This document shows, one piece after another, positions 49-46,536 of a stretch of DNA of 64,000 nt. The DNA is taken from NCBI GenBank assembly GCA_977017575.1, contig CDRNVI010000002.1:992001-1056000 (forward strand), given 5' to 3'. The DNA comes from Paramoeba atlantica. Taxonomy: Eukaryota > Protista > Discosea. Below the pieces are notes generated by a model. The model had not been told where the DNA came from, did no database searches, and saw nothing but the letters and a program-made list of their open reading frames with translations. The position numbers and the translations under genes were made by a program. How positions within the stretch are numbered: the stretch's first letter is position 1; each line of letters starts with the position of its first letter.

Positions 49-1164
49 AACGACGCACCACCTGATACATCCGGCGATGCACCTGAACCTGATGCTCCCT
101 ACGAAAATAAATATTCAGAGTTGTCTTTATGCGGTTTAACGCATCGCGCTCTCACCTTTCTAAAACAATTTTATCCCTTTGAAGAAATTTTTGCGAGCTT
201 TCTTTTTTTGCGGTGTGGGGGTAGCTACGACATTGTATCAGAACTCATATCCTTGAAATTCGGAACCGGTTGGTCTGAACGTTCTTGTTCTGACAAGATA
301 CCCGCGTTTTTTAAAAAACTGCATTCCGATATGAAGGATACATGGCTTTGTTTGGATTCCGATATTTTGCACCATGAATCAAACGCAGTTCTTCCTTTTT
401 GGGATAAGGACATAAAGGTGGTGATGGACACAGTGCCACTGTACGTTGATAGCTTGCCTCACTGCTATCAACCCAAATATGCTACACACGTCGTGAAAGC
501 GCTCGTAGCATCTACAATGTCTGGGTATGTTTGCTTCACAGCAGACACATTGTACTGTGGAGCCTCATCCGACGCCGTTATTCAGGACTGTAGTGGTATT
601 CTGGATTTTCTGGCACACAATCGTGTTCGCGCTCTTGCTGACGGGGGATTTTACGATGGTCTTACTGATAGATTAATAGTACCCCATTCTAAAGCCAAAA
701 TTTGGTGTTCGAAGCGCCCAAAATCTAAGTCTATGCAGAAACATCATGATTCAGAAGCAGATGGTAAAATGTGCTTCAATGAAAAGTTGGCTCACTTTAG
801 ATCGCGGGTCGAACACATTTTTTCTCGTTCGTGCTGTGGCAAATGGCTGGCTTTTAAGCAGTGGACTCGTAGTCCAGATTTTCTTTACTATGCTTTTTCG
901 TGCGCTCTCATGGTTCATAACATGGAAGTGTTTCATAAACATGGACCTCAAGGAAGATATCCACCTCTTACCCCTGAGAAAGTGGAAGCAGTTAAAAAGA
1001 AGATAATGGAGCACAAAGGACAATCTTCCAGATATGGAGTATCTGACAGTTCTACTATCACAGGTCCGATGGACAAATACACGTATCCTAAAAATCTTGA
1101 TGCGTATGTTTTTTTTCGTGAACAACAATCCCCCCACCAGCACTCAACCAATAACCCCCTATGA
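49..1164 (+). mobile_element. DDE transposase of PIF/Harbinger-ISL2EU (IS5-like, DDE_Tnp_4) type; 5' end lies upstream of window, probable frameshift near nt 50
   Basis: Motifs VVMDTVP, YQPKYATHVVKALVASTMSGYVCF, CGASSD, ALADGGF, FN..LAHFRSRVEHIF give a D-D-E triad in DDE_Tnp_4 order. Frame 1 is open from 49; frame 2 is open over nt 2-58. Confidence 0.8.
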
Positions 1165-12564: not shown

Positions 12565-13938
12565 ATGGGTCAGGGAGAACGCCGTGCCGCCATTCTGCGT
12601 CGCAGAACTGTCGATGAGCAAATTAAATACTGTATTTTGATTGAAGGGGCTTCGATTTTGCGTAAAGAAATTCAGCACAATCCAGAGTCGCAGAGAATAC
12701 TTCACTGGTCTTCATGTCTTCCTTCTTCCTATCGTGAACGGATGAACGTTTCGCATGCTTTGGGTGATGGGCAAAAGGCCTCGTTCGACGAGCATGAAAC
12801 CGACAAACAAACCATTGCCCCGGAGGACGGAAGTGTATCTGAATCAGATACTACGGAAGCACAAATCAAGGGTAGTTCCGAATTAGCTTTACAGGTGGGA
12901 AATAAAAATGTCAGTATTGAAGTAGAAAATCCAGAATTTGTTACAAATCTTTCAAAGGTGTCCAACAAAACGTTTCCACCAAAGGAAGGGATTGAAACGC
13001 CCGGAGCAGAAATTTTAACTGAGATTTCATATTATGAATCACGAAAAAATATTCCGGAAACCCGAATAGACAGTGATGCCAATCCGAATTGTGATTCACA
13101 TGCTAGGAACAAAGACTCTCCACAGAAAAAAGTGTCCAACCGCACCACAGAGCCTTCGCAGGAACTGTCACCCAGTGAGTCACTATCTCGGTGCACCTCC
13201 GAGGCGGTCCGGTTTATTATTGGGGAAAATTTTTCGAAAGCGGTGGCCCGGGGCCTTACGCACCTACAGAAGGATGTAATGGCGTTCTACTGCGTACTAC
13301 TCGGAATTACTGATAAATTGCCTAAAGCAGGAAAGAATATTTTGCTTTGCATGCTTACTAATTTTTTTTACACTTCCCTTTTCAATCGCTATATTGGACC
13401 ACATAAACGGGAGCAACCTTCTCCCCCGCGGGCCACTGCAGTATCATCGGAACTGCCACGGAAATCGAAGCGCATCAAAGACAAAGCCTTTTTGGTGCAA
13501 AAAGAGGTCGCATCAGATACAAGAACTGAAGGTGTGGAGGCAATTGTAAAACCGCGCAAAGCAAAATCCCAAGAAACAAAATATGATTATCACCTCCGGG
13601 ACGAAGAAACTTTTTCTAGATCCTCTTTGACCAACAGCACTGCAGTTAATTTATCTAACACCCCCTTTCCTACGCATGTCGCCAATCATGATATCACTTC
13701 GCAGCATGAGCTTTCTGATCATGAACCTTCGGGTGGGCTTCTTCAAAAGTATGTTCCTTACTTTTATGAAGCATTCGAGAAGTCCCCCATTCTTCCCCTT
13801 GCTTCAGTGCGGGAATGTGTTGCGTTACGCCTTGGTGCAGACCCCCCTATCTCTGAGTTACGATCAGTCGCGCGGCAGCTGCATGACTTGCAACAAATCG
13901 CGTATTGTGTTAGCGATGACATTATGTATGTAATCTAA
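12565..13938 (+). CDS. Hypothetical protein, largely disordered, possible C-terminal winged-helix (MCM3-C-like)
   Basis: 457-aa ATG ORF; the C-terminal ..ELRSVARQLHDLQQIAYCVSDDIMYVI resembles the MCM3 C-terminus. Confidence 0.6.
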   Translation: MGQGERRAAILRRRTVDEQIKYCILIEGASILRKEIQHNPESQRILHWSSCLPSSYRERMNVSHALGDGQKASFDEHETDKQTIAPEDGSVSESDTTEAQIKGSSELALQVGNKNVSIEVENPEFVTNLSKVSNKTFPPKEGIETPGAEILTEISYYESRKNIPETRIDSDANPNCDSHARNKDSPQKKVSNRTTEPSQELSPSESLSRCTSEAVRFIIGENFSKAVARGLTHLQKDVMAFYCVLLGITDKLPKAGKNILLCMLTNFFYTSLFNRYIGPHKREQPSPPRATAVSSELPRKSKRIKDKAFLVQKEVASDTRTEGVEAIVKPRKAKSQETKYDYHLRDEETFSRSSLTNSTAVNLSNTPFPTHVANHDITSQHELSDHEPSGGLLQKYVPYFYEAFEKSPILPLASVRECVALRLGADPPISELRSVARQLHDLQQIAYCVSDDIMYVI

Positions 13939-14333: not shown

Positions 14334-16037
14334 ATGCTCCCCAGTACCCTTCACCGGTGCGCACTCAAAACTTCCCGACACCGTCTTGCCGTCATGGCCT
14401 CTTCCCCCGAGCTCGGCATTACCATCCCCTCCCACGACACCGTTCCACTGCCCACCTCGCCGCTCCCTCCACTTACCCCCACCGGGGTCTTTCCCAAAGG
14501 TCAGTCACTACCCTCTGTAGGAGAGCGTCACACCGAGGCCCTGGGTCCACACCTCCTTCCCTTCACCACGGAACTCACCAAACGCCCCCCGTTGTCCTCT
14601 CCCTCCTCCCCAACGAGTCCCCTTCCCTCAACCACAACCCGTACCACAACCCCCAGTGTCGCCCCCTCTGTCGTAAACACCATCTTAAATCCTGCTGTCG
14701 TAAACACAACCCCCAATCCCCCTGTCCTCAGCACAACACCCCATTCATCGGTACTCACGACAGCATCGAACTCCGCTGTTCCTTCCTCCTCCTCCCCCCT
14801 TTACGACCTCGCGACCGGACTTCCCTTCTCCCCTGTACTACGCGACGCCCTTCACGAGAAATCCAGCGACTTCTCGTCTTCCTCTTCCTCTTCTTCCTCT
14901 TCTCTCTCCTCTCCCTACTGGGTCACCGACACCCACCTCGCGGCCTCCGGTGTCGAGCTTCTCCCCCAGTTCCGAGGCAAAGGGTTCGACACCCGTCGCC
15001 TGGGAAGACACCCCCCCGGTCCACAACACCGGTCCAGCCCCCCCGAGCGTCGGTTCGCGCAGGGCCGCGATCTCGAGCTCACCCCCACGGAGCAAGCCAT
15101 GGTCGACGCCGGGGCGATGCTCTACCACCTCTCCCAAACCCGTGAGGGGGCCACGCTGGAGGGGCTCCGCGGGCGGCTGGTCCCGACCGACGCGCTCACC
15201 GCGGCGCCGTTGCCCGCCCCCACCTCGAATGTGCTACGGGAGGCGGTGGGGGGCTACCCCACCAGTCAGTGGGTCCGGGAGGAGTTCCTGTGTCTCGGGC
15301 TGCGGCCGGCCCCGGAGGCCCGGGCGATTTGTATCACGGTGGAGGAGACGTATGAGGATGAGGATGAGGCGGGGGGTGGTGGGGGGTCTACGGATTACCT
15401 CCACCGCCTGGGGTTCTCGCGTCGTCCCGTGGCGAGTTACTCGGAGACGTATTACAACCTGGCGGATCTCGTGGTGTCGTCTGAGTTGCTGACGAGGCTG
15501 CGGGAGTGTTACCCGAGGAGTGCGAGTACGCGGAAGTGTTACCGGCCAACGGTGGCGGTGCCATTGCTGAAGGTGGCGCTACGACACTCGCTTACCTCTC
15601 CGTTTTGGGTTACCATGAAAGGGGCATTGTATGCCGGGTCACGTGTCGTGGATGACTCCCTGGGGGTACGCCCCACGGCGAGAAGTGATACCGTGCTGCA
15701 CAACACGGAGTGCTGTGCGCAGTCGGAAGATTTTTTGGAACGACTGCAAAGTGGGGTACCTCGAGCGATGTCTGGGTATAACGGAAAGCCGTTCTCCGAG
15801 GAGTCACAGTCGGCGCTGCGGGAGGCCAAGGGGGTCCGAGGGTTCAATAGCGTGTATTGGATGACCCGGAAACAGGCACGGGAGCTGGGGTCGGGGATTC
15901 GCCCTGGTTCCGTGTCGGTGACAGTGCCCATGTCAGGTGGAACTCGGGAATTTTATAACGTGGACCAAACGGAGTCACCCACCCGGATTATGGATCGTTT
16001 GCAGTTTTTGGGTCTCCTGCAGCCAGTGGGCGTATGA
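14334..16037 (+). CDS. Tc38/RBP38-family ssDNA/RNA-binding protein (4 ArdC-N-like repeats), paralog 1, long Pro/Ser/Thr N-extension
   Basis: Repeats P.(S/N)A.(S/T)G..Y...L......S..W.T..QA...G......YN..QT, e.g. NSVYWMTRKQARELG..FYNVDQT. Confidence 0.78.
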   Translation: MLPSTLHRCALKTSRHRLAVMASSPELGITIPSHDTVPLPTSPLPPLTPTGVFPKGQSLPSVGERHTEALGPHLLPFTTELTKRPPLSSPSSPTSPLPSTTTRTTTPSVAPSVVNTILNPAVVNTTPNPPVLSTTPHSSVLTTASNSAVPSSSSPLYDLATGLPFSPVLRDALHEKSSDFSSSSSSSSSSLSSPYWVTDTHLAASGVELLPQFRGKGFDTRRLGRHPPGPQHRSSPPERRFAQGRDLELTPTEQAMVDAGAMLYHLSQTREGATLEGLRGRLVPTDALTAAPLPAPTSNVLREAVGGYPTSQWVREEFLCLGLRPAPEARAICITVEETYEDEDEAGGGGGSTDYLHRLGFSRRPVASYSETYYNLADLVVSSELLTRLRECYPRSASTRKCYRPTVAVPLLKVALRHSLTSPFWVTMKGALYAGSRVVDDSLGVRPTARSDTVLHNTECCAQSEDFLERLQSGVPRAMSGYNGKPFSEESQSALREAKGVRGFNSVYWMTRKQARELGSGIRPGSVSVTVPMSGGTREFYNVDQTESPTRIMDRLQFLGLLQPVGV

Positions 16038-16524
16038 ACAACATTCACGCATGGTTTGTGTTTGCGAATGTTTGTTTCTGTTTTTTTCTAAATCATTAAT
16101 TGTGTTGTAGAGTAAAATCACGAAGTAGATCAGAAGTCGGTGTGTAAGTTAATAGGCCTTTTGGTGGTATATTTTTTTACTAAATGCTACTCTGATTTAG
16201 AAATGTTTGATTTTTTATCTAGCCCTTAGTACACTAGAACCCCTTTTCTCTTATCATGCGTTGTAGATGCGATTCACTTTACTATGAGATACTCAGAAAA
16301 GGAACTCTTAAATATGTATCATATTTCGTATTCACATTGACAAACTTTGTATAAATTCGTAACGATAAGAATCGGGCGGCTTTTATCTTTGTGTCACGGT
16401 TTGCACATCATTTTTCTTTTGTTGGTCAACGGCAAAGCTTTTGTATTTTCATATTTTTGTTCAAAGATTAAGCCGAATTTTACAGGAGATATTCTTTTTA
16501 TCTTTCCGTGTTTTTTGCTACCTG

Positions 16525-17922
16525 ATGATTCGACTTTCGTCTAAATGGTTCAAGTCTAGCAAAATCTTTGTCCCGTCTTCCGCTACCGCAACGGGATCCA
16601 AGACCGCTCCCTCCGCCGCTCCTCGTGCTTTAAGTGCTGCCACTGGAAAACCCTATCCCTCCGGCCTGGCCCAAACCCTAAACATTCGCGCATTTCGCTC
16701 CAACCTATGGCTCACGGAAGCCCAAATGGCATTGTGTGGTGTCACGCTACGTGAGGATCAGCGTGGCAAAGGGGTCGTCGTCCCTCGCCGTCCTCGATCC
16801 TACACGCTCTACAACGCCTCACAAACCACTGACTTTGACAAAGTCCGCGCCATGCAGGGAAAGCTTAATGTCACCAACGCCTTGACCGGGAACGCAATCG
16901 CCGCCACGGCCGCCGCAAAGCTCACCGCCTCCCTCGGGGACTTCCCCACCAACCAGTGGGTCACACGACACCAAATCCACGCCCTCTCCTTAAAACTACT
17001 CCCCGGCGCCACCCCTGTAGTCATCACACACATCACTCTAAAAAAACGTCCCCCACGAAAACGACCCTTGGCCATTACACACCCCTCCTCCTCCTCCTCC
17101 TCCCCCTCTTCTCCCCCCACCTCATCCACCAAACGTGCCACAACTCTCACAACGGCTCATCTCTCACCTTCTTCGACTTCTACAGCTTCCCCTACATCTC
17201 GCTCGTCGTCTTCGTCTTCACCCTCCCCTTCCCCCACGACCGCTTCTTCTACTGCTACTGTCACGACTACCACTACCACTACTACGACTCACTACTACAA
17301 CCTGGCTTCTCTCGCCCACCCCTCCACCCTCTCCCTCGCCCACACCCTCTACCCCCGCTCCGCCCTCTCCCGCAGGCCCTACCACCGCGGCGTCGCCTAC
17401 CCCTTACTCCGGGTCGCCCTCGAGCGCGGGTTCCGCTCCCCGTACTGGCTCAGCCGCGAGACCGCCGCACGCCGGCGGGTCGGGCTGCGGGAGGGGGCGA
17501 CCGGGGCCGCGGTGTGCTTCTACCGGAAGCGAAAGCTGGTGCTGTACAACGCCGAGGAGACGACGGCCCCGGGGAGGGTGGTGCCGCGGGGGGGGACGGG
17601 ACGAACGACCCCCCGGGGGGGTCGGTGGGGTCCCGGGGGGTTGACGTTGCTTCCGAGGTCGGCGATTTCGGGGGGGCAGTACCCGGAGCCGACGCGGTCG
17701 GAGTTGTTGGAGGTGGCGCAGCAGAGAGGGTACCGTTCGCCGTTGTGGATGACACGGCGGCAGGCGGCGCATTTGAATGCGGAGGTGCGAAGCGGGGAGG
17801 AGCCGACGGCGGTGCATTTTTATAAAGGGTCGCTGGAGTTGTTTAACGCGGAGCAAACGAAGAATCGGTACTTTTTTGCGAATCGACTGAAAAAATTTAG
17901 ACACGTGCGAAAGAAGGGGTAA
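16525..17922 (+). CDS. Tc38/RBP38-family protein, paralog 2
   Basis: ATG 16525 (MIRLSSKWF presequence-like); four repeats, including PRSAISGGQYP..GYRSPLWMTRRQA..LFNAEQT. Confidence 0.8.
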   Translation: MIRLSSKWFKSSKIFVPSSATATGSKTAPSAAPRALSAATGKPYPSGLAQTLNIRAFRSNLWLTEAQMALCGVTLREDQRGKGVVVPRRPRSYTLYNASQTTDFDKVRAMQGKLNVTNALTGNAIAATAAAKLTASLGDFPTNQWVTRHQIHALSLKLLPGATPVVITHITLKKRPPRKRPLAITHPSSSSSSPSSPPTSSTKRATTLTTAHLSPSSTSTASPTSRSSSSSSPSPSPTTASSTATVTTTTTTTTTHYYNLASLAHPSTLSLAHTLYPRSALSRRPYHRGVAYPLLRVALERGFRSPYWLSRETAARRRVGLREGATGAAVCFYRKRKLVLYNAEETTAPGRVVPRGGTGRTTPRGGRWGPGGLTLLPRSAISGGQYPEPTRSELLEVAQQRGYRSPLWMTRRQAAHLNAEVRSGEEPTAVHFYKGSLELFNAEQTKNRYFFANRLKKFRHVRKKG

Positions 17923-18644
17923 GGAGATGAATAAATAGAGGAAACGCTAGCTCGTAAAAAAGGTAATCTCTTTTTTTGGGGGGTCATGTCAGGCGTCCTT
18001 TTTGCGGTATCTTGTCTTGAATGTAAGTTTCGGTGCATTATGGTGCATGCAGTGCGTATCATACACTGCAATGTACACTGCAACGGTGTAACTGCAAACT
18101 ATTTGTTATTCACTCGCTAGGAGTAAACCTCTATACTAGAGGGAGGGCGTGGTACTTCACATCCCGTGGCCCACGATTCGCTGGTTTTATAGAGATGAAA
18201 ACGACATGACCCCTTTCGTTATGACGATGTAACACTTTCAAGAGCATTTTTCGATCTTCGACAATGGCATGTACGGCTGTCGCACCGTTCTGGGCATCCA
18301 ACTTATTCAGCTTCAATCACCTCGTACACACACATTGTACATTTTACCATTTACCATGACGATTACATCTCCGATGAAAACAACTTTAATTGTTTCTCAA
18401 TTCGAATTGTATAGATTTAGTGTCTCTACCTAACAAAATTATCTATTTTACAAATTCTGATAATATTTTCACAACGTCCAGCAAACAAAACAAACCACAA
18501 AGAAATCCTTTTTTCCACACTACCACCCATCCACCCCCAGCCATGCTCCGTTCGGCCGTCCCCACACGGTGAACCTGACCCCACAACACCCAAAAACACC
18601 CACCCCAACCCAAAAACACCCCTTTCCCCCCTTTTCTCCTCTCC

Positions 18645-19775
18645 ATGTTCCGTCTCTTCCTCCCCTCCCGCACGCCCTTCTCCCCCCGCTCTCTCGCCTA
18701 CAGCGCCGCCACCGGTGCCCCCTACCCCGCCGCCACCGCCGCCGAGCTCGCGGCCAAGGGCTACCGCTCCAACCTGTGGCTTACCCGAACCCACGCCGCG
18801 TTGGCTGGGGTTGCGCTCCTCACCGAGGAGATCCCCAACGGCCACCCCCTCCCCCTCTCCCGGGGACTCGTCACGTTATACAATGCCGACCAAACCACCG
18901 ACCCGGGTCGTATTAACGCGTTAAAGGGCCAGCTGTTCCCGACACACGCCCTCACGGGGCTACGACTCGGTCCACAGGCCTCGGCGGCCATTGCCGCCTC
19001 CGCGCGTGTGATCAGCGGGGACGCACGCACCTGTAATGAGTGGGTCACGGCACGAGAGTGTGAGATACTCGGGTGGGGACGACGCGGGGGTTCGAAGGAG
19101 AGGGCGGGGAAAGGGGTCTCGGTGGAGGTGGTGGTGGAGCAAACATCGACGGACCCGGACGGGCTGCCGAACGTCACCGAGGTGAGGAAGGTGGTGGAAT
19201 ATGTGAATTTGACGGAGCTGGAGAGCCCGTGGAGGGTGCGGACGGCGAGGGAGATGTACCCGATGGCGGTGTCCACGGGGCATAAGTACTCGATTGAGCC
19301 CGCGCTGGTGTTGTTGAAGGCGGCGGTCAGGTATGGGTACTCCTCGTGTTACTGGCTCACGTCGGAGGGGTGTAAAGACCTTGGGATTCAGGTGCGTACT
19401 CCCGAACAAGGGGTTCACCTGCTCCTTCCTCGGCGGAACTCCGAGGTGGTGTTGTATAATGCGGACAATACGTTGGGGAGAGCCAACATCGTAAAGGCGG
19501 CGTACCGCTCCCGGTTAAAACCACGCTCCGCCAAAACAGGCTTGCTGTTTCCCCCGGAAACCCGATCCCAGTTAGAGAAACACCGGGAAGAGCGTGGGTT
19601 TGGCAGTCCATACTGGTTAACTTACCCCCAAGCTTTCGTGATCGGGGTGAAAATACTCTCTAACGAACGCCCGAAGACAATTATGATGTCTGGTAAAGTG
19701 ACTAACTTGTTTAACGCGGATCAAACGGATAATCCCCGAAAAGTTTGCCTCTATGCCGAGGATGGAAGGTGGTGA
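18645..19775 (+). CDS. Tc38/RBP38-family protein, paralog 3
   Basis: MFRLFLPSR presequence-like start; four repeats, e.g. PRSAKTG..GFGSPYWLTYPQA..LFNADQT. Confidence 0.8.
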   Translation: MFRLFLPSRTPFSPRSLAYSAATGAPYPAATAAELAAKGYRSNLWLTRTHAALAGVALLTEEIPNGHPLPLSRGLVTLYNADQTTDPGRINALKGQLFPTHALTGLRLGPQASAAIAASARVISGDARTCNEWVTARECEILGWGRRGGSKERAGKGVSVEVVVEQTSTDPDGLPNVTEVRKVVEYVNLTELESPWRVRTAREMYPMAVSTGHKYSIEPALVLLKAAVRYGYSSCYWLTSEGCKDLGIQVRTPEQGVHLLLPRRNSEVVLYNADNTLGRANIVKAAYRSRLKPRSAKTGLLFPPETRSQLEKHREERGFGSPYWLTYPQAFVIGVKILSNERPKTIMMSGKVTNLFNADQTDNPRKVCLYAEDGRW

Positions 19776-20228
19776 ATTACACATTTTAGAGCAAGCTCAC
19801 GCGTCTCGTAACGTTCTTCAGGTACGTACCTAGACAGCTTGGACTCGTCTTCTTTGCTTAACCAACTCAAATTATTGTGTTGCCCCCACTAAAACAAACT
19901 TGCAGATTTTTGTAAAACTGATTAGATATTGAAGATACGGTACGCAAAATCGTGTTGTAAAGTACATAGCCTACATAAAGTACATCTATGAATTTCTCGG
20001 TGTTCCGTTAGACTTAAACGTGAAAGCTTCCGTGCTGGCGTACACACAGCTTTCTACAATAATCCACATTAGAATAGAATTTCTTACGGAACAACGACTT
20101 ACAGTAGTACCATTACAGCTTTTTCTCTTTTTTTACCGTATTGGACAACTATAATTTTCAATAATCAAAGTCGTATACAAATCATTGACAAAACTCTTAT
20201 TGGCTTTCCTTACATCCTACACTTTATA

Positions 20229-21353
20229 ATGTTGTTTCGGAACCTCTCTTTCTTTGCGAAGCAAGTCGCCTCAAAGAAGCCCAATTCCACTCTCCCCGCT
20301 GCTTCCGCAGTTTCCGCGCTCACCGGCGCGCCTTATCCCAAAAGCAAAACCACCGAACTCGTCGCCCGTGGGTTCACCTCCCCCGTATGGCTAACAGAGA
20401 AACAGATGGAGACCATCGGGGTGGGGCTGAAGCCCGGGGCCCAGGGAAAAGGTCAAAAGCTCTCCTTCTCGGCCGGAACCTCCTGCACACTCTACAACGC
20501 GACCCAGACTACGGACCCTGCGCTGATCGAGTCTTTGGTGGGTCGCTTGCACCCGACGAATGCGATTACCGGATATGACATTGGTCGTGAGGCCGCGCCT
20601 TTGCTGCTGAAGCGTCTCGGGAACTTTCCTACAAACGAGTGGGTGACGGAAAAACAAGTCTCGGGTCTCGGATTGAAATTAAAACCTAAGGCAAGGGGTG
20701 TGGAGATTGAGCTCGCGTTTTCTTCCCCTTCCGCAGACCCTATAAAGGACGAGGGGCTACTCCTGGATCGTGGGGTGACGGTGACGTATTACAACGTGGG
20801 AGATCTCGAGAACCCGGAGGTGGTCAAACGTGCGAAACGACTGTCCCCGATTTCTGCCTCCACAGGGCGTAAGTATGCGAAGGAGATTGCCGTTCAACTG
20901 CTACGTGAGGCACTGCAGAAAAGGTACGAATCTCCGTTTTGGTTGACTCAGAATGCGTGTCGAGTTTTGGGACTGACGTTAAAGCCACAGAGCGAGGGGG
21001 TGCCGGTCTCGGTTGCGTCCTCGTCCAAACAGATTGTGCTGTTCAATGCGGACTGCACTAATAACCCCTCCAAGGTGGCTTCAGAGTCGTACAAGGCACA
21101 GTTCCAACCACGCTCTGCGGTATCTGGGGCATTGTATCCCGAGCCCACGAGCTCGGAGCTCTCATCTTTCGCGCTGAAAAACAAGTTCCGTAGCCTTTAC
21201 TGGCTGACGTACAAACAGGCGAGCTTCCTAGGGGTGGACATAGTGCCAGGACAGAAACCGGCAGAGGTGTTTTTAGGCTCCGTTTACGTTAAGGTGTACA
21301 ACGCCGACCAGACCACGAACAAGAAGAAGGTAGAGGAGCACGCGACCAAGTGA
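20229..21353 (+). CDS. Tc38/RBP38-family protein, paralog 4
   Basis: MLFRNLSFF presequence-like start; four compact repeats, e.g. PRSAVSGALYP..RSLYWLTYKQASFLG..VYNADQT. Confidence 0.82.
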   Translation: MLFRNLSFFAKQVASKKPNSTLPAASAVSALTGAPYPKSKTTELVARGFTSPVWLTEKQMETIGVGLKPGAQGKGQKLSFSAGTSCTLYNATQTTDPALIESLVGRLHPTNAITGYDIGREAAPLLLKRLGNFPTNEWVTEKQVSGLGLKLKPKARGVEIELAFSSPSADPIKDEGLLLDRGVTVTYYNVGDLENPEVVKRAKRLSPISASTGRKYAKEIAVQLLREALQKRYESPFWLTQNACRVLGLTLKPQSEGVPVSVASSSKQIVLFNADCTNNPSKVASESYKAQFQPRSAVSGALYPEPTSSELSSFALKNKFRSLYWLTYKQASFLGVDIVPGQKPAEVFLGSVYVKVYNADQTTNKKKVEEHATK

Positions 21354-21942
21354 GCCGCGGGGTGCGAGGATCACCGGATGTCTGCATGGGAGCGTCTTGA
21401 TGTGTCATGATTCTCCTCTTTTTGGTAATTAGTTTGTTTAGATTATATTTTTTACGATATACTGAATGTGTGGTATCACACACACCTCGTCTTCTGAATC
21501 TTGGAAAATGTTTAGAAATGTGTGTATTCCATAATAAAAATTGGCAATAGAGTACTTTCAGAGTAGAATAGTATGTAATTTTTGTGGCCTTCTTTTCTCT
21601 CGCACTATTTATATGATTTCTGGTTCCTTACACGATACCATTTTGAATACGTAAGGAATCACAATGGAGAACACAAGAGTAACGAAAGTTTTTTAATTCG
21701 CAACCCTTGTTTATCCTTCATTTACGAAATCTTTTTTTAGAGATTTTAGATGGTACTCTACTTATTAAACCCATGGCGGCGAATAAGACATAACCGAAAG
21801 AAGGACTTACCGAAAAATAGGCCTTTGAAGGCTTCACACGTACCTCTCCATTTTTTCTCTCGAAGTTGTTAAGCACCTTTTTTCAACACTATTTTTGATC
21901 CTCTTTTTTTCACTTTTTAGCCCTTTGAGTTTCGTTCCCGAC

Positions 21943-22716
21943 ATGTTTGATCAAACCCCTCCACAACCCCAATCACTACTTGTGAGCCGATTTCTTCTAC
22001 CCCATCTTCACGCTACCGATTCCACCCCCTCCCCTCCCACATCCCATCTCGGCAAATCCCGTCGGTTACTGCACCCACCGGAGGTTGATCTCCTCACCCT
22101 CACCCAGCATACCCTGTGGCCGCATCACTCTTGGAACCGCGATGTCCAGGCGTGCATGTGGGCCGGTGTGATCTGCGACGTCTCCGGGGAGATCCCCACG
22201 GAGCTACGCTGGGCGGGTTTTCTGCTACATGGCAACCTGACCTGGGAAGCGCTCCCGCGTACAACACGCCGCGTAATACTCTCTAACAACATGCTGGGAG
22301 GGACGCTGGACCTCACCGCATTGCATGACATTGTGGAATTCTTCTCTGTGTCGTATAACCGGTTGGGAGGAACGCTGGAGCTGCGCGAGTTGCCTCCAAA
22401 TATTGCTACTCTAAATGTAGCGCACAATCGATTCACCGGAGGGGTGGATCTGCGGATGCTTCCCAATACGCTCACCGGACTGTTTTTACAGGATAACTAT
22501 TTGAGTGGTGTGGCACACATCCCAAGCGATCCGGACGCCCGGAAGAATAGAGATCCAAAAACGATAGACCTTACTTTGAACCCGAATTTAATCGTATTTC
22601 CCGACGTGGGAATTAGCCGAGAAATACGGTACGATGGAAGTGCCGAGCCGTGGGAGTATTCCTTCCTGGTTCTTGGCGCTTTGGCCGCAGTTTTAGGTAT
22701 TGATTTGATTTTTTAA
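21943..22716 (+). CDS. LRR family protein with C-terminal TM anchor
   Basis: ATG 21943; SW..ACMWAGVIC cap, 4-5 LRRs, hydrophobic tail FLVLGALAAVLGIDLIF at the stop. Confidence 0.82.
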   Translation: MFDQTPPQPQSLLVSRFLLPHLHATDSTPSPPTSHLGKSRRLLHPPEVDLLTLTQHTLWPHHSWNRDVQACMWAGVICDVSGEIPTELRWAGFLLHGNLTWEALPRTTRRVILSNNMLGGTLDLTALHDIVEFFSVSYNRLGGTLELRELPPNIATLNVAHNRFTGGVDLRMLPNTLTGLFLQDNYLSGVAHIPSDPDARKNRDPKTIDLTLNPNLIVFPDVGISREIRYDGSAEPWEYSFLVLGALAAVLGIDLIF

Positions 22717-22822
22717 TCAAACTGCTACAAAAGTTTGACGGGTTGAATATCCGAGTATCGTAATATCTGTTGAAGAAAATGCTTTTTCACTTCAGTAAGC
22801 TTTGAACTCATTTTATGTAGTA

Positions 22823-23107
22823 AACCATGTTCCAGGATAGTATACCCATGCCCACTTAGTATGCCTACCCCCCCCTTCCCAGCAACAGGAGCGTGAGACG
22901 TGCCTTTTTTAGAAGCGCCAGAGCATTTTTCTAGCAATCACACGGTATTAAATCGCATTTTAAGGTCAAGACACCATTTTTCTAGCAACTACAGATGAGA
23001 AACGCGCCGCGAAGCGGCGCGAAAATTTTTTTCTGCATTTTAGACAAAATTTAGTATACCGTACCCACTTAGTATACCTACTAGGTATACTATCCTGGAA
23101 CATGGTT
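22823..23107. mobile_element. Complete 285-bp MITE
   Basis: 24-bp TIR AACCATGTTCCAGGATAGTATACC at both ends; TAGTA on both flanks (22818-22822 and 23108-23112). Confidence 0.85.
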
Positions 23108-23706
23108 TAGTACCAAACTGTGCCGTTTCTTCAGAACTTCAGAAGCTACTACTCCCCCTGTCATTAATAATGATAATCTTAAAAAAGATATCGTTCTATG
23201 TGGTGAAGACTCTTAAAAAATTATCAACTTATTTTCATGCACGCAAGATTTTCTTAAAAAAAAGTTTTTTGAACTAAAAAACTACTGGTAAGGTTTCAAA
23301 ACCGGCCCAAATTCGGGTTAAAATTTATCATTTTTGACCTGAAAATCGTGTTTTTTGGCGAAAACTATGTACTACCCCTGCCATTAATGATAATGATAAT
23401 AATAATCTCAAAAATATTATCATTATCATTATTAATGACTTTTTTTGCACTATTTTCGTTATTTTTCGGAATTTTTATTGTACCTGTAGCTAGTTATTGT
23501 ACCGGGGAGGTACATTAAAACGGACGGGGGTTTACTTTGATTTATTAGTATTAAGTTATTAGTATAAGTTTCACACATGATTCTATGTTTTTTATAGGAT
23601 AATCAACTTTTTTCTCGACGATACGCCCATAACATCTTTATAAGGCATTATTTTCTTATCATTGTATTAGTTTTTTTTTCTTGTGCTAACACGCTACATC
23701 GGTAGA

Positions 23707-24573
23707 ATGCTGCAAAATGCATTGTTCTCTGACCCACATGCCCCTGGACGAAACTCCAAAGCAATCTCAGATACCCCTCCTTGCCGACTGGGAAAAGTAG
23801 CTGGCATTATTTTACCTCCACAGGTTGCTCTCGATCTTTTTCTGCAAAACATCACGTCACGCGATCCTTCTTGGTCCACGGAGAGAGATGTTTGTAAATG
23901 GGGACACGTATCCTGCGATGAGAATTCCACTCTTCGCAAGCTTATGTGGTCAAACCTTGGTCTTATGGGGACTCTTGCATGGCGCTTTCTTCCGCACAGC
24001 CTTGAATTCATACTTCTTGGAGGCTATGGCAGTAATAATGAGCTTTCAGGTTCCCTGCCTGCTGCGCACCTCCCAAGGAATTTGGTCACACTGTCGTTGT
24101 CGGAGAATAAATTCTCGGGAGAGCTTTATCTGCTAGACATGCCTCAAACTCTCCTAGATTTGTCCGTTCGTTCGAATTGTTTCTATGGCGTGCTTTCCCT
24201 TCCTGATTTACCACCTACGGTAAGAACATTTAGTGCCTCCTACAATAAATTCTCCGGTCCCCTTGTCCTTGATAAACTCCCAGAATGTATTGTAGAATTG
24301 TATCTCACAGCGAATTTATTTGAAGGGAGTGTTCGATTAGACCAATTGCCATTTACAATGCGTCGACTTCACCTGTCCGACAATAATCTTTCTGGGTGCA
24401 TTGAACTTCATTCACTACCGGTTACTCTTGTTGCGTTGTTTTTACACTGTAACAAGTTTAGCGGACCGCTTGATGTATCTCATGTACCCCAATCACTCCA
24501 ATCGCTCTATCTTTTCGGAAACCAGTTCACTTCAGTCTACCCCGAGGTACTTCCATCTTGTGTTAAAATATAG
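23707..24573 (+). CDS. LRR family protein
   Basis: LPPQVAL..F..SW..VCKWGHVSC cap followed by about 8 LRRs of 23 aa. Confidence 0.87.
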   Translation: MLQNALFSDPHAPGRNSKAISDTPPCRLGKVAGIILPPQVALDLFLQNITSRDPSWSTERDVCKWGHVSCDENSTLRKLMWSNLGLMGTLAWRFLPHSLEFILLGGYGSNNELSGSLPAAHLPRNLVTLSLSENKFSGELYLLDMPQTLLDLSVRSNCFYGVLSLPDLPPTVRTFSASYNKFSGPLVLDKLPECIVELYLTANLFEGSVRLDQLPFTMRRLHLSDNNLSGCIELHSLPVTLVALFLHCNKFSGPLDVSHVPQSLQSLYLFGNQFTSVYPEVLPSCVKI

Positions 24574-24929
24574 AACTGGGGATACTATGAACTCCGATAA
24601 CGATATCACTGTATTGGTTGTATATTTAATGGTTGTCCTACATTATACACCTAATACACCTGCACCATACTGGGGGTATGTTATCGTGTATTAATGTCGA
24701 TAGTGTACCCTCCCCTGTTTAAGGCAGATAGGGTGCTCTGGTGATTCTTGTTTACGGCTCTAAGATCTTTTCAAGCTTTAAGATCTAAAGTCCCTGTTTT
24801 TGAAATCCTTTTCAACGTTCTTGTTCTTTTATTGTTGTACCTATAGCTAGTTATACTGGTGAGTACATAAACCCGGATGGGGCTTTACATTTCCCGTAAT
24901 GTATTCACTAACACTGGCACCGTGCTTGA

Positions 24930-26276
<1,347 letters not shown>

Positions 26277-26921
26277 GGATACGGCGTATAGAGTAAGTGG
26301 GTAGCAAAAGGCGTTTTCAGAAACGCATTAATTGGGCTACTTGAATTGTCATGATTTTGCATTTGTGTTGAACTCGTAATCTTCTTGGATTCGAAATTGC
26401 GCTGTTGTGGGCTATCTGCCTTTTTTATTTGCACATCGAAAGGTGTGCATCTCGTATTGTGAAATAATTCTCTTGCGATTAGAGAATAGAATATTTCTGT
26501 TGCTTTCTTCTGCTCTGGGAGTGCATTTTGTAGTTGCGCTTTTTTGCTACTTCGGGGCCTTTATGTCATGTAGGAAAAAAATATACATGTGTACTGCACG
26601 TATTATAGAACACGTTATATTTCGTACAGGTCACTATTAGGTGCACGAGAATGTTTCAAAATGCATTCAGTTGTCCTACACCACTACTCAATCGCTTGTT
26701 TTCCACTGTTTTACCACCGCGTTTAACAAAGCTACTATTCCTTATGTAGGTAATGCACGGTAAAAAATATTGATAGATGTACTAAAAACAATTAGAGGAT
26801 TAGAGGTGGTCCTCCTTTTAAGTGTCCTTTCGAAATCTAAAGGCATTTTCTTTTTCATGCAAATTAAATTAAAGAAATGTATTTCTATGTACTGCCGTTG
26901 CCACATTGACCTTCCCTCTAC

Positions 26922-28136
26922 ATGCATTCCGGGTCTCTTGTCTTACATTTTCACGCAACCAGCATTGCACGTGGAGAGCAAACGAAGGTCTTTTCCCAGC
27001 CCTATTGTGCCGTGAGTGCCGCCACGGGGAGAAACTACTCGCTTGCCATTTCCCAAGCGCTTACCCGGCGTGGTTTTCTATCTCCTCTGTGGATCACGGA
27101 GTCTCAGCTTGTACTCGCTAATGTCGCTGTTAAACGTGCACATCGACATAGGGGCTACCGCGCCTACTTGCCAACTCCGGGCACTAATGAGTTCTCGCAC
27201 GTGATGTTGTACAATGCAGAGCAGACGACCAACTCCTCTCGGGTGGAATCGTTGAAAGGAAGGTTGGTGCCTGTGTTTGCTCTGACTGGTCAAGAAGTGG
27301 CAGACCGGGCGGTGTCTATTGCGTTGGCCGCCCAAGCCCAGGCTCACCCTAGCAACGCGTGGCTCACAGCGAGGCAAGTAGAGTTTCTTCAACTTCCTTT
27401 ACTTGAGGGGGCGCTCCCGGCGAGGGTTTACATGGCCAAACTTCTGGACGAGGGGGTGCAGAGTTTTCCCTGTTCTTCTGATTCTAACGTAGAGAGCACA
27501 AAACCAAAGGAGGAGTGCTATTACAACATCAATCAGCTACGTAATCCTGAGGAAGTGGCTCAACTACGCAAGCTGGCTCCAATCTCCTCTAGTTCCGGAA
27601 AAAAATATAAAGTGGAAGTGGCACTTTCACTCATGCGTGCAACACGAGCCAAAGGATTTTCTTCTCCATTCTGGATTACCGCCGGAGCTGTCACCTCACT
27701 AGGGTTACGGCTTATCGATCCCGACGGCGGCACTACAGTACACTTTTTTCATAGGTCCATGTTACTTTTTAATGCGTGTCAAACAGACCAACCGCAGAGG
27801 GTGGCAGCAGAGGCATTTAAGGCGCAATTTACCCCCAGATCTGCGATCTCCGGTAGCTGTTACCCTGAGCAACCCGCAGATATACTTTCCCGTGCCGCGC
27901 ATCGCATGAAGCATAAAAGTCTCTACTGGCTGACCCAAAAACAGGCGGCATTTCTCGGAGTTGAAATCCTGCCAGGTCAAAGTCCCGTGTTCGTATCAAT
28001 GGGCGGAGCAAAGATTCGAATGTTTAACGCGGACCAGACCAGCAATCGATCTCGAATTGAAGAACGATTCAGGAAAAAAGGTGCCCATGAAAAAGAACGT
28101 AGTAGCCTCGACACATCTTCCTCTTTCACACACTAA
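26922..28136 (+). CDS. Tc38/RBP38-family protein, paralog 5
   Basis: Four repeats; the last two are closest to paralog 4 (AFKAQFTPRSAISG..SLYWLTQKQAAFLGVEILPGQ..FNADQT). Confidence 0.82.
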   Translation: MHSGSLVLHFHATSIARGEQTKVFSQPYCAVSAATGRNYSLAISQALTRRGFLSPLWITESQLVLANVAVKRAHRHRGYRAYLPTPGTNEFSHVMLYNAEQTTNSSRVESLKGRLVPVFALTGQEVADRAVSIALAAQAQAHPSNAWLTARQVEFLQLPLLEGALPARVYMAKLLDEGVQSFPCSSDSNVESTKPKEECYYNINQLRNPEEVAQLRKLAPISSSSGKKYKVEVALSLMRATRAKGFSSPFWITAGAVTSLGLRLIDPDGGTTVHFFHRSMLLFNACQTDQPQRVAAEAFKAQFTPRSAISGSCYPEQPADILSRAAHRMKHKSLYWLTQKQAAFLGVEILPGQSPVFVSMGGAKIRMFNADQTSNRSRIEERFRKKGAHEKERSSLDTSSSFTH

Positions 28137-28338
28137 TTCTGGTGAAAGGGGACTCTTTTTCCCCCGAAAAATTCTTTTACCTCCTCTTATTTTCTTTTCA
28201 CTAGGGCTATTTTTCCATTGTATTTTCTTCTTTCACATAAAAAATCGTTGTTATCGTGCCACACTCCCGTTTTATCTACACGCTATTCCCTCCCTCTCTT
28301 TCTCTCTCCCTCCTCCTCTCTCTCCCCCTCCACCCCCC

Positions 28339-29463
28339 ATGCAGCCCACCACCCCCTTCGCCCCCTCCGTCCCCGGCTCCCCCACCTTCCTCCCCCCCGA
28401 GTACAACCTCTCCAGCCCCGACCTCACCCTCGCCCCCCCGCCCCACGCCCCCGCCCTGGAGCTCGAGGGCCCCGCCCAGCTGCTGTACAAACTCGAGGAG
28501 GAGACCCGAGCCCACAGCGAGCGCGCCCTCGGCCTCCTCGAGGCGCTCCGCGCGACCGTCCAGGTCTACCGCGGGCTCAGCGAGCAGCTCAGCGCGGAGC
28601 GCGCGGAGGCGTACAAATGCCTCCGCCGGGTCGACCGGATTGTCTCGCGGTACGGCTCCGTGGAGGACCCGATCGTCGCCAGTGATGGGTTTACCTATGA
28701 GCGAGGGGTGCTGGAGAGGTATTTGGAGGATTGCGAGCGCGCGTCCCAGACCCCGGTGAGTCAGCAAACGAAGGAGCCGTTGGAACGGACGTTGTACCCG
28801 AATGCGAGTTTGAAAAAGTTGGTGGATTTGTTGAAAGGGTTGCAGCTGGCGTCGGTGTATAACGCGGGGAGTCCCACGACGGGGGCGGGGAGTCGTGGGC
28901 CGGAGTTTAATGGGAGTGATAGTTTGACGGAGCTGTCGTCCTCGCATGACCATAGTCCGGTAAGTGGGTTGGAGGGTCAACGAGTGGTGAGTACCCCGCA
29001 CGGGGGAATATCGCAGATGGCTTCTACAATCATATCTACACCAACTCCAAATAACGCAGCTGGACACCGGCGAAACCACGGAGTCAGTGGGGGCAGCACT
29101 CAAGGACCGCTCTTGGCGAATGTTACCCCAGGAAACAAACCTTGGGCTCGCCAACGGGGACAGAATCGTGACTCACATTTACAGAAAAGTCCCTCGGACT
29201 ACGCTCTGCCGGGGAATTTGGTTATGGGACATTCGAGTACTGGAACTAGCAGGCAAGGGGTTATGGATCACCCCGAAGGCGGCACCCCCCCTCACACTCA
29301 TCCTTGTCTACGAATTTACGGCCGGTGTAATTACGGGGAGCGTTGTGTGTATGCCCCTTATCCATATGAGGTGTGTTTAAGCAACTTAAAGGGGAAGTGT
29401 CGCCTCGGTGCACGATGTCCCGAACCTCATCAAGAGATGAAAGTTGGAACCCCAAGTGACTGA
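28339..29463 (+). CDS. U-box + CCCH zinc-finger RNA-binding protein (ZC3H39/ZC3H40, CSBP-like)
   Basis: Coiled coil, then U-box EDPIVASDGFTYER..SQQTKEPLERTLYPN..LKKLV, then C-terminal CLRIYGRCNYGERC..CLSNLKGKCRLGARCPEPH; ATG at 28339. Confidence 0.78.
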   Translation: MQPTTPFAPSVPGSPTFLPPEYNLSSPDLTLAPPPHAPALELEGPAQLLYKLEEETRAHSERALGLLEALRATVQVYRGLSEQLSAERAEAYKCLRRVDRIVSRYGSVEDPIVASDGFTYERGVLERYLEDCERASQTPVSQQTKEPLERTLYPNASLKKLVDLLKGLQLASVYNAGSPTTGAGSRGPEFNGSDSLTELSSSHDHSPVSGLEGQRVVSTPHGGISQMASTIISTPTPNNAAGHRRNHGVSGGSTQGPLLANVTPGNKPWARQRGQNRDSHLQKSPSDYALPGNLVMGHSSTGTSRQGVMDHPEGGTPPHTHPCLRIYGRCNYGERCVYAPYPYEVCLSNLKGKCRLGARCPEPHQEMKVGTPSD

Positions 29464-29889
29464 ACGTGGTCACCGGTTGCTTTTAATACTTTCAAATTAC
29501 CCACCAGTTAGTGGTGTAAGATTTGGATCTTTGAAGAAACAGGGCAGTATGTGATTTGGTAGGGAGGCTGGAGAAGGCATAGAGGCGTTAGAGATACAGT
29601 GTACTGACACAGTACCTAATGAATGAAACTGTTCCTTAGATTGTACATTGCAGTTAAATTAAGCATAGGCATATTTCGTTGTCTTATAGTATACATCATG
29701 TATGATAGAGGAAGTCGAAGAAGTACATACACTGGATTTCGCTCTATCTCAAATCTGTAATTGCAAACAATTGGTAATCTTAAATTCGGTAGGTCATTTT
29801 CTGTCCTTAATTTTTATAGCAATACTATCTTAAGACATCGTAACCTATTTTCTCTTAGAGTTTCATCCTTCGGGGTACATTTTAAAACT

Positions 29890-31629
29890 ATGAACTCTCG
29901 ATTATCGTCTTCATTAGACGCCATTGAAAAGGTATTCGCCCCTTCTCATCTAAAGTCATTACGAAACCAGCGACGCCAAAATAAATCCACGAACCATATC
30001 GAATCCGGATTCCCTAAACTCACCAATCTATCAATTGCTTGGAGCTTGAATGCAAATTGCCAGAAACATAGAACACCTTGCATACACTCCGTCACGAGTG
30101 ACTTTTTTCGACATAAACAAGTCTCAAAAAGATATTACAGCACTCACACCCCTAACACATCCATTGAGGAGGTAGTTCCCCTCTCTTCATCTCTCTCTCC
30201 CCTTACGACCCCCCGCACCCCTCCCGATACCCCTTCCACCCCTTCCCATCATGATCCTCCCCCTCCCACCCCACACACACCCCAAAATTCCCCTGAACCC
30301 CCTCTCCCTCCGAACCCCACGAACCCCCACCATACAACCCCCACCACCCCCCTCCCCACCCCCCTTCCCTCCACCCCCTCCCTCTGGCCATCCACCTCTA
30401 CCGCCGACCCCACCCACGGCCCCCTCCACTACGTCCACACCGAACTTGATCTCCTCCGTTCCTACCATCTCCCTGCCCTCGCCTCTCTCCCCTCCCCCTC
30501 CCCCTCCCCCCTCTCCTCCCCCACCCCCCTCCCCTCCCCCCTCCACACCGCCGCCACCCACCTCCTCACCACCCCCGGCAAACTCCTCCGTCCCGGTCTC
30601 ATCTGCCTCATGGCCTACGCCCTCCTCCCCCTCCCCCTCTCCACCGCCCTCCACACCCAGGTCCGTACCCACCCCACGCTCTACCGCCAACTCCCCACCC
30701 CCACGCAGCTCACCCGGACTCCCCACCAGACCCCCCCCTCACCTTCCCCCCCCTCCTCATCTCCTCAGGCCACAGCGCACCTGCCCTCTGTAGCCTCTGT
30801 ATCCTTATCGACTCCTACTACTCCTACGACTACCACTACTCCTCCTCCCATGACCTCCCTTCACCCCATCCTACGCCTCGCTGCCGTCACCGAGCTCATC
30901 CACACCGCTTCCTTAATCCACGATGACATTCTCGATGGCGCCACGACCCGTCGCGGGCGTCCCTGCTTACATCAGACGGAGCGTGGGGGGACCGCGACCG
31001 CCGTGCTCGCGGGGGACTACCTGTTAGCGAAGGCCTCCGGGGCCCTGGCGGCGCTGCGGGAGCCCGAGGCGGTGGTGTGTATGAGTCGCGCGCTGGAGGA
31101 TCTCACCAAGGGGGAGGTGATGCAACGGGAGGGGGTGGGGGGGGTGCGGGGGTACCTGGAGAAGAGTTACTGTAAGACGGCCTCGTTGCTGGAGAACGCG
31201 CTCAGTGCGGTGGGGGTGGTGTGTGTGGGGGAGGGTGCGCCGGAGAGGGGGTATGCGGCGGATTTTGGGCGCCACCTTGGGGTGGCGTTTCAGATTGTGG
31301 ATGATTGTTTGGATTTTACAGGGGACGCGAGGAAGCTGGGGAAGGAGGTGCATGCGGATTTGCAGTCGGGGATCGCGACGCTTCCGGTGCTGTTGGCGGC
31401 GGAGAAGGATGAGGGGGTGCAGGCGCGTGTGCGACGGAAGTTTGAGGTCCCAGGCGATGTGGATTACACACTTGACGTCGTGCAGAAGTTACAGACTGTT
31501 CCACAGGCTCAGCAGTTGGCGTGGGAGGAGTATGAAAAGGCAATGGTCGCGTTGCATCAGTTACATTCTTCTCCGGCTCGGGAGGTGCTGGCGAATGCCG
31601 CTTCGTATGTTCTCTCACGTTCTGAGTAG
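29890..31629 (+). CDS. Trans-polyprenyl (solanesyl/decaprenyl) diphosphate synthase with Pro/Thr/Ser-rich insertions
   Basis: GKLLRP, ELIHTASLIHDDILD..RRG (FARM), VLAGDYLL, KTASL, GVAFQIVDDCLD (SARM), DL.SG..TLPVL. Confidence 0.92.
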   Translation: MNSRLSSSLDAIEKVFAPSHLKSLRNQRRQNKSTNHIESGFPKLTNLSIAWSLNANCQKHRTPCIHSVTSDFFRHKQVSKRYYSTHTPNTSIEEVVPLSSSLSPLTTPRTPPDTPSTPSHHDPPPPTPHTPQNSPEPPLPPNPTNPHHTTPTTPLPTPLPSTPSLWPSTSTADPTHGPLHYVHTELDLLRSYHLPALASLPSPSPSPLSSPTPLPSPLHTAATHLLTTPGKLLRPGLICLMAYALLPLPLSTALHTQVRTHPTLYRQLPTPTQLTRTPHQTPPSPSPPSSSPQATAHLPSVASVSLSTPTTPTTTTTPPPMTSLHPILRLAAVTELIHTASLIHDDILDGATTRRGRPCLHQTERGGTATAVLAGDYLLAKASGALAALREPEAVVCMSRALEDLTKGEVMQREGVGGVRGYLEKSYCKTASLLENALSAVGVVCVGEGAPERGYAADFGRHLGVAFQIVDDCLDFTGDARKLGKEVHADLQSGIATLPVLLAAEKDEGVQARVRRKFEVPGDVDYTLDVVQKLQTVPQAQQLAWEEYEKAMVALHQLHSSPAREVLANAASYVLSRSE

Positions 31630-40508: not shown

Positions 40509-41014
40509 CTTGGTGTCATTTCGTTGTCATGATTATTCATTTCACACTGCACTTTTGGCTTCTTTTGACTACTACCTGTAGCGTTCGGTAACGCATGTCT
40601 ATGACTGGACAAACCGTTGATTGTTGTGATCTCATAGTTATTCCTTGTTATCCCTGCATGACGTGTGTCTTGCCCCAATGAGAAAAAAGGAGACGTCCGT
40701 TGGAGTGTCCAAAATTTGTCAGCTGAACACACCAAAGTATTGTTTGATTCTCCCGGAAATTCAAATCCACACGTGATCCTTGAATCCCCTCGCACCTTAA
40801 GTGCTCTTTAATGTGCTTCTCGAAGCAGATCCCCGTAGCTAGCTTGCGAAAGATGTGCTTTTTACTTTTTCGTTACAACGTAAATAACACGTACCTTTGA
40901 AGAAGTGTGTCCCAACTCGAGTACACGATAATGTAAGAAATTCTTTGTTAGCATTATTTGAAATAAGTGTCTACCTTTAGTTACATTTCTTTGTTTTCTT
41001 TATTTTCTGCGGTC

Positions 41015-45825: not shown

Positions 45826-46536
45826 ATGGAGATGACAATAAACCATTTTGATGAATTTGGGTACATCATTCCTCTTGAGAAGACAGCGGTAAGACTTTAT
45901 ATGAAACTTTATATGAACTTTATTTTATCTTGCATCATACAGTTTTCGAAACTGTTGAAATGTTTACACAGCACTCCGTCCAATAAGAAATCGAATGAGT
46001 GTTTCCTTCTTATCCATACCACATCGAAATCACGCAACATCGGGTCTATCCTTCGTAGTGCATCGGCATTTGGCATCAAGGAAGTTCTTGTTGTGGGCCG
46101 CAGAAAGGAAACAAATTTCTTTGGTGCCCATGGCACCCAACGGCGAGCAAAGATATCTTTTTTTCATAATTTGGCAGAAGCAGCTCATTTTTTGCGGGAT
46201 ACACACAAATGTCTAATTGTGGGTGTTGAGATAGCTGAAGGGGCAAAATCTTTGAGTGAATGTTCTCCTCCTTTTTACGCGTCAACGTGCTTTATCTTTG
46301 GTAATGAAGGCACGGGTCTCTCTGTTGAGGATCGCTCTATTTGCGATTATTTTCTCTACATTCCTCAGACGGGGGATGGCACTGCCTCATTGAATGTTGC
46401 CACAGCAGCTGGTATCGTGTTATATCACTACAATGTTTTATGGGCACGTCATCCAGAGACCTCACGGAAGGGTGAAAAATATTTGCTAAATCAAGCAGCA
46501 GAGGAACCCATACTGCTAACTGCTAATCCGGATTAG
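45826..46536 (+). CDS. SpoU/TrmH-family RNA methyltransferase
   Basis: N.GSILRSASAFG, FIFGNEGTGLS, YIPQ.G..ASLNVATAAGIVLY. Confidence 0.88.
   Translation: MEMTINHFDEFGYIIPLEKTAVRLYMKLYMNFILSCIIQFSKLLKCLHSTPSNKKSNECFLLIHTTSKSRNIGSILRSASAFGIKEVLVVGRRKETNFFGAHGTQRRAKISFFHNLAEAAHFLRDTHKCLIVGVEIAEGAKSLSECSPPFYASTCFIFGNEGTGLSVEDRSICDYFLYIPQTGDGTASLNVATAAGIVLYHYNVLWARHPETSRKGEKYLLNQAAEEPILLTANPD

Follow-up and report, generated by a model that had tools for sequence, protein, structure and literature searches.

Five genes encoding proteins of the Tc-38 (p38/RBP38) family form a tandem array in a stretch of 64,000 nucleotides, referred to here as the window (positions 992,001 to 1,056,000 of contig CDRNVI010000002.1, Paramoeba atlantica assembly GCA_977017575.1). 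The array spans 13,803 nucleotides (14334–28136), and all of the genes in the window are on one strand. We refer to the five copies, all on the + strand, as T1 (14334–16037, 567 residues), T2 (16525–17922, 465 residues from the ATG), T3 (18645–19775, 376 residues), T4 (20229–21353, 374 residues; the protein that was modelled) and T5 (26922–28136, 404 residues), the last copy, which is separated from T4 by three other genes. We consider it probable, at roughly 0.8, that this is an old array of nuclear, kinetoplastid-specific Tc-38 genes, with each protein consisting of a short basic leader and four ArdC-N domains that bind single-stranded nucleic acid. A first-pass annotation of the DNA had placed five open reading frames (ORFs) at these starts, with four repeats apiece, and had read the repeats as ArdC-N domains of the Tc-38/p38/RBP38 family. 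All five ORFs are present, Pfam and alignment agree on their repeats, and the reading is correct, although the gene family is largely an expected one.

Membership of the family is evident from Pfam. All five proteins match the Tc-38 entry (PF20054) with 75.9–140.9 bits, in 3–4 stretches each, against a curated cut-off of 23.2 bits; the E-values range from 2e-21 (T1) through 2e-24 (T3), 9e-28 (T5, 4 stretches) and 1e-32 (T2) to 1e-41 (T4, 4 stretches). All five also match ArdcN (PF08401) with 36–89 bits, above the curated cut-off of 22.6 bits, and with E-values from 9e-9 (T1) through 4e-19 (T3) to 4e-25 (T2). A search for other Pfam domains in the five proteins found none. In particular, there is no Pfam match to a metalloprotease C-terminal to ArdC-N, as found in ArdC proper, nor to the transglutaminase-like domain and three BHD domains found in XPC/Rad4. 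The proteins have four tandem ArdC-N domains each and nothing else, which is within the range described for the family, i.e., 2–6 domains per protein, with 3–4 being commonest, and low-complexity linkers between them (PMC6222260).

The four repeats are collinear from end to end across an alignment of eight sequences (the five window proteins and three relatives). Each repeat has an invariant W, within S-x-x-W-L-T or W-x-T, and the [YF]-N of an L-Y-N-A-x-Q-T type motif. Most copies have the full motif in their repeats 1, 3 and 4; repeat 2 has Y-Y-N, with the Q missing. The motif, degenerate in T1, is the h-h-s-x-x-Q “squiggle” that Krishnan et al. name as the defining mark of an ArdC-N domain (PMC6222260). 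When the repeats were cut out and compared, the best partner of repeat k was repeat k of another protein in 32/32 cases. This indicates that the ancestor already had four domains and that whole genes were duplicated. Judged from sequence, the four-domain architecture is therefore older than the gene duplications.

Structural comparison leads to the same family. Searched against the PDB as sequence alone, the alignment profile matches ArdC of plasmid R388 (6I89/6SNA) with an E-value of 7.5e-7. An AlphaFold2 model of T4, the only copy modelled, was built from a 30-sequence alignment and has a mean predicted local distance difference test score (pLDDT) of 90.9 and a predicted template modelling score of 0.81. 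A helix-strand-helix-strand-strand-helix unit occurs four times in the model, and the sole disordered part is formed by residues 1–22, with pLDDT under 50. The best three Foldseek matches of the model in the PDB are all ArdC chains. In VIA-align, T4 residues 205–285 superimpose on residues 40–135 of ArdC (6I89) with Z 11.2 and a root-mean-square deviation of 1.8 Å over 80 residues, at 25% identity; for the BHD domains of Rad4 (2QSG), compared with single T4 repeats, Z is 3.3–4.1 over 40–49 residues. The check proposed in the first-pass annotation, by profile and AlphaFold against ArdC-N, has thus been borne out, and profile and predicted fold together establish the assignment of the repeats to ArdC-N.

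The individual copies differ outside the conserved core and in how well they keep it. T1 has a P/S/T-rich N-terminal extension, with ~170 extra low-complexity residues ahead of repeat 1, and a poly-Ser insert within repeat 1. Among the five copies it has the most degenerate repeats, with YH for YN, WVR for WVT, and HN for YN. In T2, an S/T-rich linker of ~100 residues joins repeats 2 and 3, and the net charge is +49. The N-termini of the copies are short and basic, with 2–5 K/R and 0–1 D/E within the first 30 residues. They had initially been described as presequence-like; the part of this description that stands is that they are short and basic and, in the T4 model, disordered, which is compatible with a presequence but does not demonstrate one.

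The named relatives of the five proteins point to kinetoplastids. Word-index searches of proteins, whether started from T4 by itself or from the eight-sequence alignment, returned only five metagenome proteins and led to a full HMMER search. With the alignment profile, HMMER found 435 family proteins at E ≤ 0.001 among 1.84 billion proteins. The best named matches are from Papus ankaliazontas, Perkinsela sp. CCAP 1560/4 and a transcriptome of Paramoeba aestuarina, an amoeba that harbours a Perkinsela endosymbiont. All matches whose source name was retrieved are from a kinetoplastid or from an amoeba that hosts one. Three of the Perkinsela proteins that HMMER places in the family, KNH07939.1, KNH07778.1 and KNH05611.1 (P0155, P0156 and P0032), have GenBank names that look wrong: tRNA/rRNA methyltransferase, actin and F-type ATPase beta chain, respectively. 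KNH07778.1 served as a Tc-38 seed in a 2018 paper (PMC6222260). Other relatives are very long, with 2655 residues and 16 stretches (P0017), 1115 residues and 9 stretches (P0023), 1246 residues and 7 stretches (P0040), and 965 residues and 6 stretches (P0029). These very long relatives exceed the 2–6 domains described, and could be giant proteins or gene calls run together across tandem arrays.

A careful IQ-TREE analysis of 42 sequences places the five genes within the family. The canonical p38/Tc38/RBP38 clade, which contains RBP38 from Leptomonas and Lotmaria as well as a Neobodo protein, is split from all other sequences, including the five, by a branch with 100/100 support, and none of the five falls in the canonical Tc-38.1 orthologue group. 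T4 and T5 are in a 14-sequence clade (95/93) together with Perkinsela KNH08381.1 and KNH07939.1, a Papus protein, and two proteins, M2 and M3, encoded on a contig (L001) from a different metagenome sample. T4 pairs with M2 (95/90), T1 pairs with a third protein of that contig, M1 (99/96), and T2 is sister to T1/M1 (89/77). An approximately unbiased (AU) test rejects the five window genes as a single clade (log-likelihood difference 41.4, p 0.0014). From these sequence comparisons, the five belong to an early-branching, Perkinsela-type part of the family rather than to the p38/Tc38 orthologue group that has been studied, and the named members of this sub-branch are all Prokinetoplastina (Perkinsela and Papus). 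Judged by this family, the source of the array is a Perkinsela-like kinetoplastid: in both HMMER and the tree, the nearest named family members are those of Perkinsela and Papus.

The paralogs T1–T5 are 27–40% identical to one another, and their gene order provides further evidence that the array is old, as had been supposed from the divergence of the copies. L001 has no DNA similarity to the window, but its genes occur in the same order. First comes an orthologue of a conserved hypothetical gene, the upstream neighbour of the array in both species (12565–13938, + strand in the window; first ORF of L001, E 2e-26); M1, M2 and M3 follow, next the orthologue of the array's downstream neighbour, a U-box/CCCH zinc-finger gene (27961–29463, + strand, Pfam U-box and zf-CCCH; E 2e-57), and then a polyprenyl synthase gene (Pfam polyprenyl_synt, E 5e-59), whose counterpart in the window (29761–31629, + strand, E 5e-52) is a second downstream anchor. 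M3 adjoins the U-box gene, as T5 does. The orthologous pairs and the synteny together imply that an array with at least T1, T4 and T5, and both of its flanks, predates the split from the L001 species. Since T2 branches ahead of the T1/M1 split, the absence of T2 from L001 looks like a loss there rather than a gain in the window; the 1.4 kb that separate M1 from M2 were searched for relics of T2 and T3, and none were found. L001 also bears a RESC6 gene. Two other contigs (L002 and L007) are another assembly of the same organism as the window, with 98.9–99.6% DNA identity, and are not independent evidence.

Tandem placement of family members is also seen elsewhere. Perkinsela has a side-by-side pair of diverged members, and a 746-residue member lies 3 kb downstream of the RBP38 gene in Leptomonas. 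The homologue in Perkinsela that is closest (P0009) has no further family member called within 10 kb on either side. A CCCH gene near the Tc-38 pair of Perkinsela was considered a possible orthologue of the U-box/CCCH gene in the window and rejected, having no similarity to it; with this comparison, synteny with Perkinsela was not demonstrated.

Several features suggest that the genes are in use. The reading frames of all five copies are intact, and the GC content at third codon positions (GC3) of coding regions is 0.50–0.74, versus a GC content of 0.34–0.43 in the spacers. By gene, GC3 is 0.70, 0.69, 0.74 and 0.66 for copies 1–4 and 0.50 for copy 5. In each copy, a polypyrimidine tract lies within 300 bases ahead of the ATG, which is the expectation for trans-spliced kinetoplastid genes. 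Four DNA-type runs of one study contain the array stretch, with ~1% polymorphism. A small run from 2015 (X5), guessed to be RNA, has a 1099-base contig at 20280–21378, which is nearly exactly the T4 coding region, and a 176-base contig inside T3 (19515–19690); no X5 contig is in the spacers or in T2. The X5 contigs are suggestive of transcription. Other runs of the same organism have spacer deletions of 3 bases and 7 bases (at 18474 and 20029 of the window) and ~1% substitutions, and both variants occur in one run at 18331–18506, indicating that two haplotypes or strains are present.

The likely function of the proteins is read from their characterized relatives. In Trypanosoma cruzi, according to the published account (PMC2654453), Tc38 is mitochondrial, moves around the kinetoplast DNA (kDNA) through the cell cycle, and binds poly[dT-dG], or TG-rich single-stranded DNA, as well as the universal minicircle (origin) sequence. 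By homology to Tc38/p38, the window proteins would be imported into the mitochondrion by their short basic leaders, and the four domains of each paralog would hold a stretch of single-stranded DNA, likely at replication origins or where the kinetoplast chromosomes are unwound. It has been proposed in print that tandem ArdC-N domains span up to ~24 bases or more of unwound origin DNA, and the same paper proposes that diverged paralogs serve different circles. The diverged paralogs of the window may likewise differ in the sequences or the classes of molecule that they recognise. RNA is a possible target too, in the manner of RBP38, for which an RNA role was reportedly first described in Leishmania. 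Mitochondrial targeting, binding of kDNA or RNA, and any heteromeric complex are features that we infer by analogy. The Tc-38 family goes unmentioned in a preprint from 2026 that describes a new protein of kDNA replication.

Other explanations of the array differ in its age, in the state of its genes and in the role of their products. The array might be a recent expansion specific to this organism that serves an unusual kDNA, as the five copies here versus three in L001 would suggest, and the first-pass annotation had favoured a special expansion of this genome. The divergence of the paralogs, the orthologous pairs T1-M1 and T4-M2, and the position of T2 ahead of the T1/M1 split, with the loss from L001 that it implies, all oppose this; the L001 species has positional orthologues of no fewer than three of the five copies, and large expansions have already been published for the family. 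Together with the AU test, the tree largely refutes a recent origin, which we regard as highly improbable. It is also very unlikely that any of the copies, of which T1 would be the foremost candidate, is a functionless relic in decay. The non-consensus motif residues of T1 and its long low-complexity inserts would fit such decay, but its frame of 567 codons is intact, its GC3 equals that of the nearby GAPDH gene, and a full-length orthologue, M1, is kept in a species without detectable DNA similarity.

That the five paralogs form one heteromeric complex, as the first-pass annotation suggested, with genes kept side by side for balanced expression, would explain why neighbouring genes share one polycistronic unit and why the order of three is kept in a second species. 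However, two of the five are lacking in L001, P0009 of Perkinsela stands apart from other called members, and kinetoplastid polycistrons are not generally known to cluster functionally related genes; we therefore think this arrangement quite unlikely. More serious, though still doubtful in our view, is the possibility that the proteins act mainly on mitochondrial RNA (in stability, editing or processing) instead of in kDNA replication. Members in Perkinsela and Leptomonas are annotated as mitochondrial RNA-binding protein RBP38, Tc38 orthologues have been proposed to act in quite different processes (PMC2654453), and the ArdC-N fold binds single strands; specificity for DNA in this sub-branch would be a matter of analogy. 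Against this, direct data on the canonical member indicate that it associates with kDNA and binds the origin, and the ancestral ArdC-N domain binds single-stranded DNA (PMC6222260).

Some observations also weigh against the interpretation that we prefer, i.e., an old array of genes for leader-bearing, four-domain Tc-38 proteins. T5 has a weakly basic leader, and T1 has a long N-terminus of low complexity. T3 is unplaced in the tree, whose backbone is poorly resolved. The five proteins are only 22–27% identical to the canonical RBP38 of Leptomonas, which makes it a long reach to carry the function of RBP38 over to them, and any function for the sub-branch would be drawn by homology from canonical Tc38/p38. 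Lastly, the RNA nature of run X5 is a guess, and its contigs cannot give an expression level.

The genes around the array are of several types. As described in the first-pass annotation, two leucine-rich repeat (LRR) genes and a GAPDH gene, all on the + strand, lie between T4 and T5, and all three are matched accordingly. The first LRR-type gene (21895–22716) is 29% identical to the second (23683–24573; Pfam LRR_4, LRR_1 and LRR_6), with an E-value of 9e-20, so that the two are related; their GC3 values are 0.57 and 0.40. The third gene of the block encodes GAPDH (25041–26276, 411 residues; Pfam Gp_dh_C, E 2e-60, and Gp_dh_N; GC3 0.71). Its NAD-binding domain is matched by Pfam in two stretches, suggesting an insertion. 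The best matches of this GAPDH, at ~66% identity, are bacterial type I enzymes (Brevinematales, Fibrobacter and Tepidisphaeraceae) and Neobodo designis, and the top score belongs to a 709-residue protein labelled Symbiodinium natans. As a taxonomic marker, GAPDH gave no signal, with the bacterial type I and Neobodo matches all at ~66% identity. No LRR-LRR-GAPDH block is present between M2 and M3 of L001; the block occurs in the window and not in that species, and two species cannot set the ancestral state. Downstream of T5, the start of the U-box/CCCH gene at 27961 is that of the mechanical ORF, and the real start is probably after 28136. Additional LRR genes are dispersed along the same + strand gene run, at 2574, 6258, 36170, 38716, 52730 and 60469. 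An ORF at the left edge of the window (121–1164) encodes a DDE_Tnp_4 (Harbinger-type) transposase. Further along, a 1266-residue ORF (40967–44767) has a weak FAST kinase-like match of 24.3 bits, under the cut-off of 27.4, and a SpoU-type RNA methylase gene is found at 45826–46536 (E 1e-25); these two may be further mitochondrial RNA factors in the gene run.

Four known systems provide a comparison. The closest is the kinetoplastid expansion of the Tc-38 family, in particular the Tc-38.12 clade specific to the Perkinsela lineage. Krishnan, Burroughs, Iyer and Aravind recognized 12 paralogue clades and a 30-member expansion in Perkinsela in 2018, and traced Tc-38 to an ArdC-N origin (PMC6222260). 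The proteins of this expansion resemble those of the window in having tandem ArdC-N domains only, extremely diverged repeats and low-complexity linkers, and the nearest named sequences are from Perkinsela, e.g., KNH08381.1, which is 42% identical to T4. By contrast, the window genes are from another organism, with no more than 42% identity to any named protein, and form a tandem array of five whose order recurs in a second species; moreover, the sub-branch also holds Papus and metagenome sequences, and so is not limited to Perkinsela. Canonical p38/Tc38/RBP38 (Tc-38.1) of trypanosomatids and bodonids belongs to the same Pfam family and has the same domain type, and is mitochondrial and binds single-stranded nucleic acid according to the literature. 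However, given the low identity and the fully supported branch described above, the window five do not count as orthologues of the protein that has been studied by experiment. ArdC of plasmid R388 shares both the N-terminal fold that binds single-stranded DNA and the h-h-s-x-x-Q motif, but has one ArdC-N domain and a C-terminal metalloprotease, whereas the window proteins have four domains, no protease and a eukaryotic nuclear gene. Lastly, the BHD domains of XPC/Rad4 are a distant version of the same fold and are set in several tandem copies along DNA; the structural match is weak (Z ~4), and the window proteins lack the transglutaminase-like domain.

The array leaves the current picture of the Tc-38 family unchanged. 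It is conceivable, but speculative and on balance unlikely, that Tc-38.12 is an ancestral feature of all Prokinetoplastina that began as a tandem array, with paralogs that would each recognise a different class of mitochondrial chromosome. What is new is a five-member set from another early-branching lineage, a second one beside Perkinsela in the early-branching part of the family, along with evidence that the Perkinsela-type branch takes in Papus and several metagenome organisms. Also new is evidence that at least part of this diversity arose by tandem duplication of a four-domain protein before two prokinetoplastid-like species split. The array thereby offers five clearly bounded candidates for studies of localisation and binding in a lineage with a poorly understood kDNA.

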